A DNA stretch of 50,570 nucleotides, filler included, from Bipalium vagum (taxonomy: Eukaryota): NCBI GenBank assembly GCA_037834085.1. It is 3 parts of 3 records of this genome, joined end to end, with 100 filler letters (N's around TTAATTAATTAA, not from the genome) between each part and the next. Parts side by side here need not be neighbours in the genome. Positions count along the whole stretch, not along the records: positions 1 to 16,315 come from JBBMKC010116589.1; 2 more parts are not named here. One strand, given 5' to 3'. Each line of letters begins with the position of its first letter. The first letter of the stretch is position 1. Below are positions 6,801 to 16,315 of this stretch, in pieces. Under the pieces are notes generated by a model. That model searched no databases. It worked only from the letters and a program-made list of their open reading frames with translations, and was not told the DNA's origin. Position numbers and translations under genes: made by a program.

Positions 6801-8449
6801 TACCCAGAATTCTTATCAATTCTTTTTCCTATATGATCATAATTAATTATAATTTCTTTAATTAATTAAATAGAGATTTTTCCATTCTTCTTCAGTAGTA
6901 AATTATCAAAGTATTATTAACTCAGTCTTGATGACATATTATATTTATCTCATGCAAAAGATAACAAAATGATTTATGATTAATAATATAATGATTATTA
7001 ATAATCAAAGAATTCTCCAACACATATAATAAATGATTAAAATTAGAAAAAATATTAATTATATCGTATTGCACAAGATTGTTAAAAAGATATTTCATTC
7101 AAACTACATTTCAGGTATTATTAGCGATAAATAACAAAAGAAAATTCCTGGACAAAAAAATATAGGACATCGATGTGTTAGTATTATTTTTTCTTAATAT
7201 CTGCATAAACAGAAGACCGTGGGGAAAAAATTTTGAAAAATTGGTCAGAAATAAATAAAATTCACTCAATAACTTAATCTAACTTTCTCGAATGTCTGAT
7301 TTTTCTTGTAACATTTCTCTACCCGAAATACTGAGATTGTCGAAGATTTTATGCAACTTGTCTTCCCGTACTCTAGACTTGAGAATAAAAATATTTATTA
7401 TAATTTCTCAATTCGTATTTGGGAATTCACTCTGATAATTTAAGTTTGTCGGTAAAATTTTTGAGTGAATGCCAAATAGAAATTGTTCTCTAACAACTCT
7501 TGCCCCTTAAGAGTAATATAATTTTTTCTTTTATAATATTAATAAAAAATCTTTTTTCAATACGATTGTTATTATATTATTATTGTTAATATTCTTTATT
7601 ATTACTATTATTATCATTATTATTATTTATTTTTATTATTATTCATATTAATATTAATATTATGTTTATCAATCTGAAAATTTTTGAAACATATTCCAAA
7701 AATGCATTTTCAATATTTTTTCTTTTTCATCACTAATAACAACCTGTTAATAAAATAGCTCTATCATTCATTTTCCACAAATATTTGCTTAAACGAATTT
7801 CGTAAATATTTCGAAAATTGCGGCAAAAGGTTCAGTTTATTTCTCATTTAACTCAATTGAACAAACAATTTCCCAGACTAGAAATGGAGCAACAAAAGCA
7901 AATTACAAAAAAAATATTTTAAATTGGATAAATTCATCAGATTGGAGCAGGAAAATAACAATGACACACGCACACGATAACATACATACATCGTGCACAT
8001 ACATATAGCTACACACGTCACAATGCCGTTTCCAAGATTACAAATAACCGTTTGTATGTCCAGAGATGTATTGCTTAATTTTACCTGATTTTATCACAAC
8101 CCAGGATGCAAAGCAGTTTCCTGGGTGTGTATCTGTTAGTATGTATGCATACATACTGGCCGATGAATATTAATCGATGGGTGCTTGACTACTTCGCCGG
8201 ACCATGTGATGACTATTTTATGGAATATTTTAATATAATAATTACCCTACTTATTTAACAGAAATTGCTTGTTAATATTAAAAAGAAATATATAATAATT
8301 CAAATTCAAAATCAAAAAACAATGGAAAGCAATTTTTGTTTATATAATATTGTGATAAAATCTCATTATTGAAGAATGGGAAATAAATATTCGATAAAAA
8401 AAATAAAGTGAAAAAATATTTTTTATTGATTTAAGTAATATTTATTTAC

Positions 8450-8794
8450 TTTCTCAATACATTGATTTCATTTTTTAAGGAATCTTCGCGTGCTTGTGCT
8501 TCTTGTTTATCTTTGCTACTTGCTCTTGAAGATGCTGTTATGGCTTTCTTTTTAATACACTTTACAGCAACAAAGGAATTATTTTCTGTATCTTCAGCAA
8601 GGCGTACCTCAGAAAATGCTCCGCTAAATGATAAAAACATAAATGTTAAAAATAAGTTTCGCAAAAGAAAAAAATTTATTCAATAATATTGAATAATAAT
8701 GAATACAATGACAAATAGCAAGCACAAAAATTATATCATACGTTCCCAAAACTTCTTTGAATTGATAACGAGAAAGTGAACTTGTAAAATTCAT
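8450..8794 (-). CDS. CAMK1: Calcium/calmodulin-dependent protein kinase type I-like, first two exons (partial; the rest was not found in this window)
   Basis: Exon 8794-8742 (ATG, MNFTSSLSRYQFKEVLGT) and exon 8623-8450 join in frame through a GT-AG intron to give LGTGAFSEVRLAE...VAVKCIKKKA...NEINVLRK, the CaMKI glycine loop, beta3 Lys and alphaC Glu. Confidence 0.8.
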
Positions 8795-9399: not shown

Positions 9400-10743
9400 C
9401 ATAATTAATTGCCGCACTAAATTGAATTTGGATTTTCTTTATCAATTTTTATTTTATACTAACATTTTTACAATATATAATAAGTGAGAATTAATAATTA
9501 TAAAAATTATAATTTAAACTGTTTAGTAAATTCATACCATGCCAAATTTAAGAAAAATGTCCAACAATGAAAAAGGGATGATTAAAGCCTACCACGAAGC
9601 CGGAAAATCAAACAGGTGGATCGGAAATAAGTTAAACAGAAATGAAAGTTCCATAAGATATTAATTGAAAAATTGAGATAGCAAAAATCGTAAGCCTGGC
9701 CCAAAGACAAAGATTTCGCCAAAAACGAAATGATTGATTATTCACAAAGCCAGCAATAAATCGATTTCAAACTCGACAATTAAACATGAACTTAACTTAA
9801 ACGTAAGCAAGGAGACTATCTACCGTGTTATCAACAATTCCCAAGTCTTAAAATACCAAAAATGATGGTGAAACCACCACTCAAAGTTGAACACAAATTG
9901 AAGCGTTTGCAATGAGCGAAAACTAAAGTAGCGTGAGGCGACCAATGGAAGCAGATCATCTGGAGTGACGAAAAGAAATTTAATTTAGACGGACCAGATG
10001 GCCATTCATACTATTTTCATGATTTGAGAAAAGAAAACATGCAATTTTCCAAAAGACACTCGGGCGGAGGATCTTTAATGATTTGGGCCTGTTTCAATTT
10101 CAGTGGCAGGTCGAGTCTGGCGACTGTTTCCGGCAATCTAAATCAATGGGGGTATCAGAGACTCCTGAAAGACAATCTAATACCTTTTATAAAAGATTTT
10201 GGCGGATTCAGCCCTGTCTTTCAGCAAGATAATTGCATGTGCCAAGTATCCTGTTCAACTATGGAATGGCTAAAAAGCAAAAATATTGAAGTTATGGACA
10301 GGCCGTCATACTCACCGGATCTAAATCCCATAGAAAACTTATGTGAGGTGTTGGTTTGGAAGGTATATGCTGGTAGAAAGCAATTCAATTGGCTGTTGGG
10401 AAGACATGGACCAATACATAATGGAAAATTTGGTAAATTCAATGCCAAATAGAATTTATGAGACTATTTATTCTCACGGCAGCTTAATAAATTATTAGAA
10501 TCGTATTGGTACATTTTTTGTGAATAAAAATCGATTTTTTGGAAATTGTGGCAATTAATTTGTGTCGGCTTTTTTAATATTTTTATTTTTTGCTTAATAT
10601 AATTGGTTATATTAAGAATTTTTCAGTCATTTTTTTACATTTGCATTAAGACTACATTGTGTAAATATTTTGAAAATTTGGAAATCTTTGGACAAAAGAT
10701 AATGTCATTTTTGTAAGTGCGGCAATTAATTTGTGACGCACTG
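9400..10743 (+). mobile_element. Tc1/Tc3-like transposon with a pseudogenised DD34E-type transposase
   Basis: ATG at 9539 (MPNLRKMSNNEKGMIKAYH...). Motifs WSDEKKFNLDGPDG, GGGSLMIWACF, FQQDN and SPDLNPIENL, with in-frame stops. Inverted repeats taattaattgccgcact (about 9403) and agtgcggcaattaatt...gcactg-TA (about 10716-10745), plus an inner repeat near 10548. Confidence 0.9.
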
Positions 10744-12070: not shown

Positions 12071-14336
12071 GATTTTTGTAAAATGAAATATATTTTATTG
12101 GTTAAAAATATTAAATATTCATTAAAAATTATGAATTATTTTTATTAAAAGATTCTCTTGCCAGTATGATATGTAATTTATTTATTTTATATATTTTTTA
12201 TTCATATATAAAATTTAAAGAAAATACAATAAGCAAAGCTTTATGATGGTTTTAACTACCAAGCTGTGTACCATAAAAATATTTTATGACCTTAATGCTT
12301 TATACAAGGTTCATTATAAAGATATAAAAATGAGTAACTGAAATAAATAACATTTAACTTCTACAATAGATTAGTTCAGATCGATACATGATCAAAAGAA
12401 TTATTTTAGATTTATGATGAGATAATGAGGCATTTAGAAGAATGTTGGATACATTTTATTTTGATTTATTATTTAATCTGGAATGAAATTAAATTAAAAT
12501 TTATCTTATTAAACATATTTGACTTTTGAAATTATTAAATCTTATTTATTCCACCGTGATAATCAATTTAATTAATTAATATTTATTTTTCAAAATTAAT
12601 TATTGAATAATTGTATTATATTTTTTTATTATTTATTAATAACTTTTCAAAAAATACATGGAATTCATCGAACGACTGTTAGTAATTTTGAAAATTTGAT
12701 AATAATTAAATTTGTTTTAATTAAGTCGATTGAATTTTTCGTATTTCTAAATCATCGAAAATCAATTTCTCTGTTAACTTTCATATTTTTTACTATTGAA
12801 CTTTTTTTGTAATCTTGACTATCAATTTAATTTTTTTTTAATTTTTAATTAAATTTTTCTTTTTTTCCATTAGATCTAATTGTCTTCTTAATTGTCTAAT
12901 TGTCTCATTAGCTAATTATATAATATAAATTATAATGATATAAACATAAATTATATAATATGATTATATAAATATTTTATTTCTTTCGTAATTATTTATC
13001 TTTACTATTTGAAAGACCGTTTTTTATTAAATAATATTGGGAATTATAATAATAACGAGTTTGGGAGTGTATCGTTGTGATTTTATTTTTTTATTATATT
13101 ATGAACTAAGAAAACTCAATCTTTTACGTACTATGGTTCAAATTAACTCCGATATGTTCTAAAATTGCTGTAAGGAAAAAAAACACTAAACAATTTCATT
13201 AAATTATTATATTATTAATTGTTATTAATATTAATTAAGATTAATTATTATTATATTAAATTTTTCTTTGTATTGTTTTGAATCATCTATTTTTTGCTTT
13301 CAATGTTATCTATCCCGATAGCAGATCCAATGATTGAAAAATTTTACTTAATGTTTGGCTTTTTAAAACAATTAATTTACATATTAATTTTTATTAATTA
13401 ATTTTTCATCTTTCCTTCCTCGAATCTAAGATCGATACTCTTGATATCAGGCACCTTTTCAATTAACTTAACGTTTCTCATTGTTTTATCATATTATTAT
13501 CAGTATTGATTTTACATGTCGTCTTCATTTAAACATTTTAAACGTTATAAATTAAATAAATAAAATTAAATAAAAAGAAAATCATAAGATAATCAGGATG
13601 GTCTCAGATGATTAGATGAAATTAACATTCCTGTAATATTTTCTTTATTTCAATTTAATATTAACAAAATTCATTTCATAATTTCATAATAATTATTTAT
13701 ATTATTATACGAAGCGAATAATTTGATTAAAGTATTTCTTTTCTATAACCATTCTCAATTCAAAAGGATTCCATGATGCACATGTATACAGAATTTTTCG
13801 ACATTTCATTATGAAAATTAAATGCCAAGACTTCCTCAAACCTTAAAATTCCAAAATTCTTTGATATATTTTCTAATGGAAAAATTCGCTTCAGATCAAC
13901 TTTTACAAATTACGTTAAGATAAATTTGAATCATCCAAATATTATTATTTTCTCTTTCCTATTGTAAAAATAAACATTATCCTCCAAAAACATCAGCTTT
14001 CGGTATCTTCAAAATAATTTCCTTGAGTAGAACTTAAAATCTTTCCATATAAACAAATTTATAAATAAATAAAATAAATTTGACAACAATTCAGTTTTTC
14101 TTTCTTTCAAAATGCAAAAGTTACATCCTGGGAAAAAATCCTAAAACCCTCCAGTTTCTCTTTAGCGTCCATAAGCCTTCCTTTCATTAATTTTTCGTTT
14201 TAGAAATCATCTTTACAAAGCAACCAATAAAAATTCCCTTGAACAAAAGAAAAAAGTCTGTGATATTTTATTTTTTAATTATGTTAAAAACAAAACAATT
14301 GTTCAAAATGTAATATTAATTTAAAGCTAGATTCGT

Positions 14337-15124
14337 TCATATATCATCATGACCCTTGACAATTTCGGAATAACATTTCAAGAAACTGTCTTTGGATTTT
14401 TCGATTTTTCCCGACCAAATACCGCACAGGATCAGTTTTTTATTAAATTTAAGCCCGACCTTGATGACATTGTCTGATTTCAGATTTCCAAACACAGAAT
14501 TTTTCGATTCCTCGTGGGTATAGGAATATTCCTGACCATAAATCTCAAATGTTTCTCCAGCGTTTTTATTTAATTTCTATTAGAAAACGATGTATGACAT
14601 GAAAAATGGTCAAACAAAAGAAAAACTCACAAAAATCGTTTGTATTTCTGTGTTCGATGGCTTGGAATCAGTAGACAATGTAGCATATATCTCTCCGGTT
14701 ATTGAATTACAGAGAAAGGCATTGGAGAATCCATTGAAATTGGTCATGTGGGTATTGAAAGATTTGATTGCTTCATTAATATTCACTTTAAATGACTAAA
14801 GATTCCGGGATAAAGAAAACTAGTTGATCGAAAAATAAATACTTTTTTCCCACCTTTTCCGCCGCAAAACAGGAATGAAATAGATATCTTACGTTTCGGT
14901 GACTTCGATTCGTGACCACTGGAATCTTTAATTTCTTCAGACTTTTTCTCTTTGGAATGTTTCTCCTCCTTGATTTCCTTTTCCGTTACCTGTTCTACAG
15001 CTTTCGATTGGTTCGGCTCTTCTTGAATAATGACTTGTTCATTGGCCACTTCAATCTCATTGGAAGATTTGGAAGATTTCCTAACTTCCGTTCCAATATC
15101 TTCTGCAACTAAAACATTCTCCAT
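14337..15124 (-). CDS. Divergent profilin-like protein with a 94-aa charged N-terminal extension (228 aa, 3 exons)
   Basis: Exons 15124-14843, 14795-14631 and 14576-14337 (TGA), joined by phase-0 GT-AG introns of 47 and 54 nt, open throughout. The C-terminal 134 aa follow the profilin pattern: GFSNAFLCNSITGEIYA...PSNTEIQTIF...GETFEIYGQEY...SVFGNLK...VGLKFNKKLILCGIW, then a terminal helix. The gene model is strong; the fold assignment is by eye. Confidence 0.7.
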
Positions 15125-15629: not shown

Positions 15630-16215
15630 CTAAACAATGAGTATTTCAAAAATTCGTGTTATTATTAAGTACGAGTTCTATCGTGGTACTAATGCAAAGC
15701 AAACGGTTTGAAATATGAGTGATGCGTTTTGTAGCAAGGTTTTCAATGCATGGATGATTTCTGAGGTTCCATGCAGAGGATTTCTGTCTTCAAAATATGC
15801 TACGTGGTTGACCTGAGACGAATGTTAATCAAGCTGAGATGAAACCTATACTGGAGAATGGTCCATCTTAAAGTACTCAGTAGTTAGCGTTGAAATCCAA
15901 TGTCTCCATCCCCAGAATAATTGACCATTTGAAACAAATTAACAAGGTTACAAAGATTGACCGATGAGCACCTCGCGAATTATACGATTATCAGAAAACA
16001 AATCGTCTTCAAGCTTGTCTTTCTTTGTTGTTACGACAGAAAGGCGAACCATTTCTTCAACGTATCGTGACTTGTGACAAAACATGGATTAGATTCGATA
16101 ATCTCAATGGTTGGATAAAGATGAAGAGCACAGGCCCTGTCCAAAGCCAAACTTTCAACAAAAGAAAATCATGATATCCGTCTGGTGATCCAGTGCTGTT
16201 ATTATCCACTACACC
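15630..16215 (+). mobile_element. Decayed mariner transposase remnant
   Basis: Motifs RLQACLSLLLRQKGEPFLQRIVTCDKTWI and KKIMISVW, with frameshifts and stops. Truncated near the assembly gap. Confidence 0.75.
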
Positions 16216-16315
16216 AGTGTTTCTCAAAGTGGTTCACAGAGGATTCGTATTCACAAAATTTTTTTTGGCCATTTCACAAAAATTTAAGTAATTCAGCGCT
16301 ATTTGTTGCTATTAT

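Follow-up and report, generated by a model that had tools for sequence, protein, structure and literature searches.

A predicted three-exon gene of Bipalium vagum joining a conserved, charged N-terminal arm to a divergent profilin-like domain

The window, that is, the whole 50,570-nt stretch of Bipalium vagum DNA that was analysed (assembly GCA_037834085.1, filler included), carries on its minus strand a gene whose predicted product combines a charged N-terminal arm with a profilin-like domain. The features of this gene, followed by two others in the window, are given below with the evidence from which each was placed.

15124, minus strand: ATG start codon (translation).
14843..15124, minus strand: exon 1, with the start codon and the 94-residue charged arm, ending in ...SPKRKISISFLFCGGKGGKK (translation).
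14843..14902, minus strand: domain-adjoining motif SPKRKISISFLFCGGKGGKK, residues 75-94 (alignment A1).
14866-14864, minus strand: codon of Cys87, within this motif.
14796..14842, minus strand: intron 1, 47 nt, GTATTT...TTTAG, phase 0, separating the arm from the domain (sequence).
14631..14795, minus strand: exon 2, 55 codons, with the N-terminal helix, strands 1-2 and a short helix of the profilin domain (BLASTP and secondary structure of the orthologue model).
14577..14630, minus strand: intron 2, 54 nt, GTGAGT...AATAG, phase 0, containing in-frame stops (sequence).
14337..14576, minus strand: exon 3, 79 codons and a TGA stop, contributing strands 3-7 of the profilin domain and its C-terminal helix (phmmer and atlas features).
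14267..14272, minus strand: AATAAA, perhaps a polyadenylation signal, some 65 nt past the stop (read from the sequence; a weak sign in AT-rich DNA).
10024-10452, plus strand: transposon remnant, a 142-codon ORF matching DDE_3 (Tc1-type transposase; 31.4 bits).
8446-8664, minus strand: probable Ser/Thr kinase exon, a 72-codon ORF (weak match to a protein-kinase N-lobe at 17.8 bits, under the cut-off).

A group of overlapping short ORFs at about 15950-16230 resembles, by eye, a mariner-type transposase fragment (CDKTWIRFDN), with no Pfam match at E <= 0.01. In the assembly as a whole, at least 69 matches to zf-C4 nuclear-receptor zinc-finger exons were found, which indicates a metazoan, and a search of the same assembly found no nematode SL1, no Col_cuticle_N (nematode cuticle collagen) and no Chitin_bind_4 (arthropod cuticle). 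The genome is that of an AT-rich, mini-intron metazoan.

The only long frame that appears at this locus in the ORF list is the ORF of exon 1 (141 aa). Splicing of the two GT..AG, phase-0 introns gives 94+55+79 = 228 codons. An open frame of 94 codons is itself improbable by chance (P about 2e-4, taking 0.086 as the chance of a stop at each codon in this window of 26% GC). Two relatives allowed the gene model to be examined from outside the genome. When exon 3 was used as query in an exhaustive phmmer search of 1.84 billion protein representatives, exactly two relatives were returned, P0001 (282 aa) and P0002 (222 aa). Residues 3-79 of exon 3 aligned with residues 206-282 of P0001 (E 9.2e-23, 60% identity), and the exon also matched residues 148-221 of P0002 (E 8.4e-10, 42% identity). 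By pairwise BLASTP, exon 2 matched residues 149-200 of P0001 with 62% identity (E 7e-20), while exon 1 matched residues 46-148 of P0001 (E 3e-11) and residues 1-93 of P0002 (E 4e-7). On P0001, the exon boundaries fall at 148|149 and 203|204, exon 1 ending at K148 and exon 2 beginning at T149. Since the exon ends thus fall on adjacent P0001 residues, both junctions are exactly as proposed. Alignment A1, which contains the three exon translations together with P0001 and P0002, indeed shows end-to-end tiling, the exons neither overlapping nor leaving a gap at the two junctions. Both relatives are full-length and share the two-part layout of the window protein, and an aligned methionine is the start of all three; residues 1-45 of P0001 have the look of read-through of a 5' leader. 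The sequence of the window itself was analysed one exon at a time, and what is said of the whole protein draws on P0001 and P0002.

On the evidence of these alignments, the locus is read as a three-exon animal gene. It is single-copy in the 440-Mb assembly of 272,664 contigs. The first-pass annotation had proposed this very model, with exon 1 as the sole long ORF, two phase-0 mini-introns of 47 and 54 nt and a product of 228 aa, and both the translation and the gapless tiling on P0001 and P0002 bear it out. Its further claim, that the charged arm of 94 aa fused to the domain is a genuine part of the protein, holds as well, the arm being homologous in P0001 and P0002. So strongly fragmented an assembly could in principle bring unrelated ORFs together through chance splice sites, or hold a decaying pseudogene, and the gene model would then be an artefact. 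We consider this extremely improbable: each exon has its counterpart in two independent full-length proteins, where the junctions are exactly adjacent, no frame is broken, both introns have canonical splice sites, and all three proteins share the start methionine.

The source of P0001 is a 1045-nt JGI environmental contig (L010), which holds one ORF unbroken across both junction positions and ends just past an AATAAA; an mRNA-derived contig would look like this. A word-index protein search with the exon 1 ORF gave no match, and the same kind of search with alignment A1 returned P0001 and P0002 only. Two scans of metagenome contigs gave no match. Within the genome, weak matches to exons 2 and 3 at four loci (L002, L003, L008 and L015) were rejected as transposon remnants or noise. 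L002, L003 and L008 have, by eye, the appearance of mariner-type transposon remnants. The arm-bearing profilin family is very rare: of about 15 billion proteins searched, three belong to it, a rarity which marks a poorly sampled animal lineage.

The assignment of exons 2 and 3 to the profilin family was approached from the sequence and from predicted structure. The first-pass annotation had suggested a scan with the Pfam Profilin profile, and the outcome was divided. P0002 passed PF00235 with 26.9 bits for a cut-off of 25 (E 5.6e-6), its residues 108-205 aligning with profile positions 10-106. The window exons, scanned one at a time against Pfam, gave no PF00235 match but sub-threshold noise only, and P0001 gave no match to PF00235 either. 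By the Pfam cut-off, membership of the family is reached through P0002, an orthologue homologous to the window exons. Other profile comparisons gave little signal: a profile built from the family only found no profilin among PDB sequences, and hhalign of the family against the genome's own profilins reached only 39% probability, but in register. Clearer results came from the language-model feature search of the atlas, in which exon 3 of the window, taken alone, gave 21 Profilin clusters among 30 named matches (top score 0.92). The P0002 domain gave profilin clusters as 27 of its 30 nearest neighbours, again with a top score of 0.92.

Structural evidence was obtained from the orthologue P0002 rather than from the window protein. 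An AF2 model of P0002:92-222, built from a nine-row alignment (A5) that included the genome's own profilins, reached a pLDDT of 82.6 and a pTM of 0.80, and its elements follow the order helix, two strands, helix, five strands, helix. Because canonical profilins were part of the alignment, this model is not fully independent evidence; with a four-row, family-only alignment AF2 gave a pLDDT of 42, which was unusable. The model predicts the profilin fold, namely a seven-stranded antiparallel sheet packed by N-terminal and C-terminal helices. In a Foldseek comparison with the PDB, all 45 matches at E <= 0.001 were profilins, the best being Arabidopsis profilin I (3nul; TM 0.76, rmsd 2.5 over 129 columns), so that the structural check proposed by the first-pass annotation, carried out here on the P0002 domain, came out in favour of a profilin fold. 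With VIA-align, run against 48,161 representative chains, the top nine matches were profilins (Z 12.0-15.3), followed by Roadblock/LC7/MglB structures (Z 10-11). For the single-sequence model of P0002 in the atlas, the structural neighbour ranked first was a profilin cluster (TM 0.72 in both directions over 119 residues), next to two unannotated archaeal clusters that scored 0.73-0.74 by query only and Roadblock at 0.62.

This second rank of Roadblock/LC7 structures, at Z 10-11 with VIA-align and TM 0.62 in the atlas, raises the question of whether the domain might have another profilin-like fold, of the Roadblock/LC7/MglB or longin type, and belong to a regulator associated with small GTPases or dynein, all the more as the profilin sequence signal is weak in two of the three family members. 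Such an identity appears very improbable. The curated Pfam cut-off was passed for Profilin with no match to Robl_LC7 (PF03259 matched neither the window exons nor P0001 nor P0002), the profilins score about four Z units higher in VIA-align and cover the full domain, all nine profilin representatives rank above the Roadblock structures, and the feature searches give almost exclusively profilin. Taken with the Pfam match of P0002, its AF2 model, the leading profilins in Foldseek and VIA-align and the exon 3 features, the reading of exons 2-3 as a profilin-like domain given in the first-pass annotation is upheld, and the domain is very probably a highly divergent member of the profilin family.

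The arm that precedes this domain measures 92-103 residues in the three proteins. About 33-40% of its residues are charged, with a net charge near zero. It is acidic over its N-terminal half to first two thirds and basic at its C-terminal end. Trp is absent from it, and Tyr occurs once at most. In a charge-hydropathy plot, the arm falls on the disorder side in the three proteins and the domain on the folded side, and the 94-residue arm of the window protein is probably disordered. It is homologous from end to end and evolves faster than the domain (30-42% versus 41-60% identity). Conservation is concentrated towards the domain: 19 arm positions are identical in the three proteins, and 11 of these lie within the last 26 alignment columns. 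This is where the motif SPKRKISISFLFCGGKGGKK is found, with the family pattern [ST]PKRK[TI]S-x3-LF-x(0,1)-CG-x(1-3)-GKK, ending two to four residues before helix 1. It comprises a basic cluster, a proline-directed [ST]P site, an RKxS site of basophilic-kinase type, an LF pair, an invariant Cys-Gly and a GKK, the LF...CG element and the basic cluster being equally conserved. The MARCKS effector domain and the SNAP-25 cysteine cluster are basic-hydrophobic or S-acylated segments that anchor proteins to membranes. The motif shares with them a short mixture of Lys/Arg, Phe/Leu, Ser and Cys beside Gly, a likeness of composition only.

A PF00235 search of the whole genome returned three other loci, the arm-bearing locus not being among them.

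G000:C213569 1232-1618, minus strand: L004, an intronless profilin of 129 aa (PF00235, 99 bits).
G000:C195819 1456-1863, minus strand: L005, a canonical intronless profilin of 136 aa with N-terminal SWASW, of SWxxW type (PF00235, 27.9 bits, barely passing).
G000:C224425 1215-1656: L006, a candidate second arm-bearing profilin (PF00235 positions 2-52, 25.3 bits).

When a mixed profilin alignment (A3) served as query in a word-index search, the newcomers were P0003 and P0004 alone. Both come from environmental assemblies and stand close to the ordinary profilins: P0004 is 67% identical to L004, and P0003 is kin of L005. The ordinary profilins of this genome are thus almost without close relatives in the databases, which again indicates that the lineage is poorly sampled. 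On its contig (L012, JGI 3300030569, 1603 nt), P0004 follows, at a distance of 176 nt downstream, an unannotated same-strand ORF of 281 aa. The contig represents either a piece of compact genome or a polycistronic transcript from a relative of Bipalium vagum.

The third locus, L006, may be a second arm-bearing profilin. A charged, ATG-initiated ORF of 70 codons, which contains GKTFITFFTCGLCTHGNK (FITFFTCGLC, with an F-x-CGLC cysteine cluster), is followed by a 52-nt GT..AG phase-0 intron and then by the exon that matches PF00235. This intron and intron 1 of the arm-bearing gene coincide in position to within one residue. The contig breaks off within the next intron, in an (ATA)n run, and the 3' half is therefore missing. 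The profilin exon of L006 has a methionine of its own (MWRNIL...), and BLASTP of its putative arm against that of P0002 detected no similarity; for these two reasons, the linkage of arm and domain at this locus is a lead only.

Profilin is a small actin-regulating protein. Nearly all profilins are bare domains of 125-140 residues, whose regulation is attributed to ligands and to phosphorylation. The canonical members (PF00235; 3nul, yeast 1k0k and Acanthamoeba 1f2k) have the fold and topology in common with the arm-bearing family, with a domain of about 131-134 aa, but share only 10-19% identity with it. They also lack an arm, whereas in the present family a conserved arm of 92-103 residues precedes the domain. 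The usual small single-domain architecture of about 125-140 aa is accordingly replaced by 228 aa, of which 94 form the arm and 134 the domain. In our literature searches, no description came up of an animal profilin with a comparable conserved arm at its N terminus.

The aromatic platform by which profilin binds polyproline comprises Trp3, Tyr6, Trp31 and aromatics of the C-terminal helix (PMC2694148). In the MAFFT alignment A5, W3 and W6 of L005 and P0003, the counterparts of Trp3 and Tyr6, face I/M/I and A/A/A, respectively, in the three family members, and one C-helix aromatic is kept in the family (KC[YF]). The mapping of these N-helix residues rests on an alignment at 13-20% identity and is indicative only. 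With this reservation, the aromatic platform seems to be missing from the arm-bearing family, and the same alignment agrees with the first-pass annotation, in which the N-terminal aromatics of SWxxY type were described as replaced.

We take L004 to be PFN4-like, a putative label that goes by the human PFN4 sequence. Since this separate, putatively PFN4-like protein exists in the genome and shows 13-19% identity to the arm-bearing family in MAFFT alignments, orthology of the family to PFN4 was rejected. Profilin-4 (PFN4) is nevertheless one of the closest points of comparison, for it has lost the polyproline platform and binds phosphoinositides rather than actin or poly-L-proline (PMC2694148). 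Mammalian PFN4 is, like the arm-bearing family, a divergent profilin paralogue without the aromatic platform, and despite this same loss it is classed as a profilin. It is also a precedent for the re-use of the profilin fold in lipid binding. PFN4 is however a bare domain of about 129 aa, while the arm-bearing family has its arm. An N-terminal extension is found in Asgard archaeal profilins, in which a profilin core carries a flexible extension (bioRxiv 10.1101/2021.08.06.455371). Those of Thorarchaeota (7pbh) and Heimdallarchaeota (6yrr) were among the structural matches to the P0002 model, with Z of 10.5 and 9.1, respectively, but they match less well than the eukaryotic profilins (Z 9.1-10.5 versus 12.0-15.3). 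No sequence relationship was found between their extensions and the arm, and these extensions lack the basic-hydrophobic-Cys motif.

Our overall explanation of the locus, which we hold to be moderately probable, is that of a single-copy three-exon gene encoding a probably disordered arm and a divergent profilin domain, the protein being positioned by means of the motif at the end of the arm. From a mechanistic point of view, the domain would no longer read polyproline ligands, as is the case for mammalian profilin-4, and the conserved motif before helix 1 would serve to position or switch the protein instead. This motif could act as a reversible membrane anchor, through S-acylation of its cysteine and/or through binding of its basic-hydrophobic patch to acidic lipids, and phosphorylation may release the anchor. 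A lipid- or actin-binding module of profilin fold would thereby be placed at the membrane. Although the most likely reading of the motif, this membrane-anchor mechanism is a tentative one. The first-pass annotation had likewise suggested a neofunctionalised, possibly membrane-tethered actin or lipid regulator with a palmitoylated cysteine and a basic patch, and what speaks for this is that no other stretch of the arm is as well conserved as the patch.

The motif may alternatively be a signal for nuclear localisation or for phospho-regulated protein docking, with PKRK, which is invariant in the three proteins, as a monopartite nuclear localisation signal and [ST]P and RKxS as kinase sites; the protein would then be a specialised profilin of the nucleus or the soluble phase, unattached to membranes. 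The hydrophilic nature of the arm and its place on the disorder side of the plot are compatible with this, as are the presence of a single cysteine in the motif and the lack of a myristoylation glycine and of a CaaX box; a nuclear localisation signal, however, would leave the equally conserved LF...CG element unexplained, and we regard this alternative as rather unlikely. The position of the motif, two to four residues from the helix 1 that lines the polyproline groove in profilins, is also what would be expected of an intramolecular pseudo-ligand or autoinhibitor lying at the former groove and releasable through phosphorylation. That the linker is Gly-rich (GG/GKK) suggests flexibility rather than docking, and autoinhibition by the arm appears improbable.

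Reversible anchoring through the motif remains our working proposal, and it can be extended from one gene to a lineage. There may exist a little-sampled animal lineage with a class of tethered profilins that have lost polyproline reading and are kept at membranes by an S-acylated, phospho-switchable, basic-hydrophobic motif terminating a disordered arm. The locus on C224425, which may join a more canonical profilin exon to another charged arm, would be a second member of what would then be a small gene family; taken as a whole, this larger picture is unlikely, and we put it forward as speculation. The arm-bearing protein is in any case an unusual variant of a well-known family and no new kind of system. 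If the proposal is true, a conserved paralogue that carries its own targeting or regulatory arm and lacks the polyproline platform would be the second example, after PFN4, of a profilin fold re-used away from formin/VASP-driven actin assembly, and it would be a natural system in which to ask what a profilin does when tethered to a membrane.
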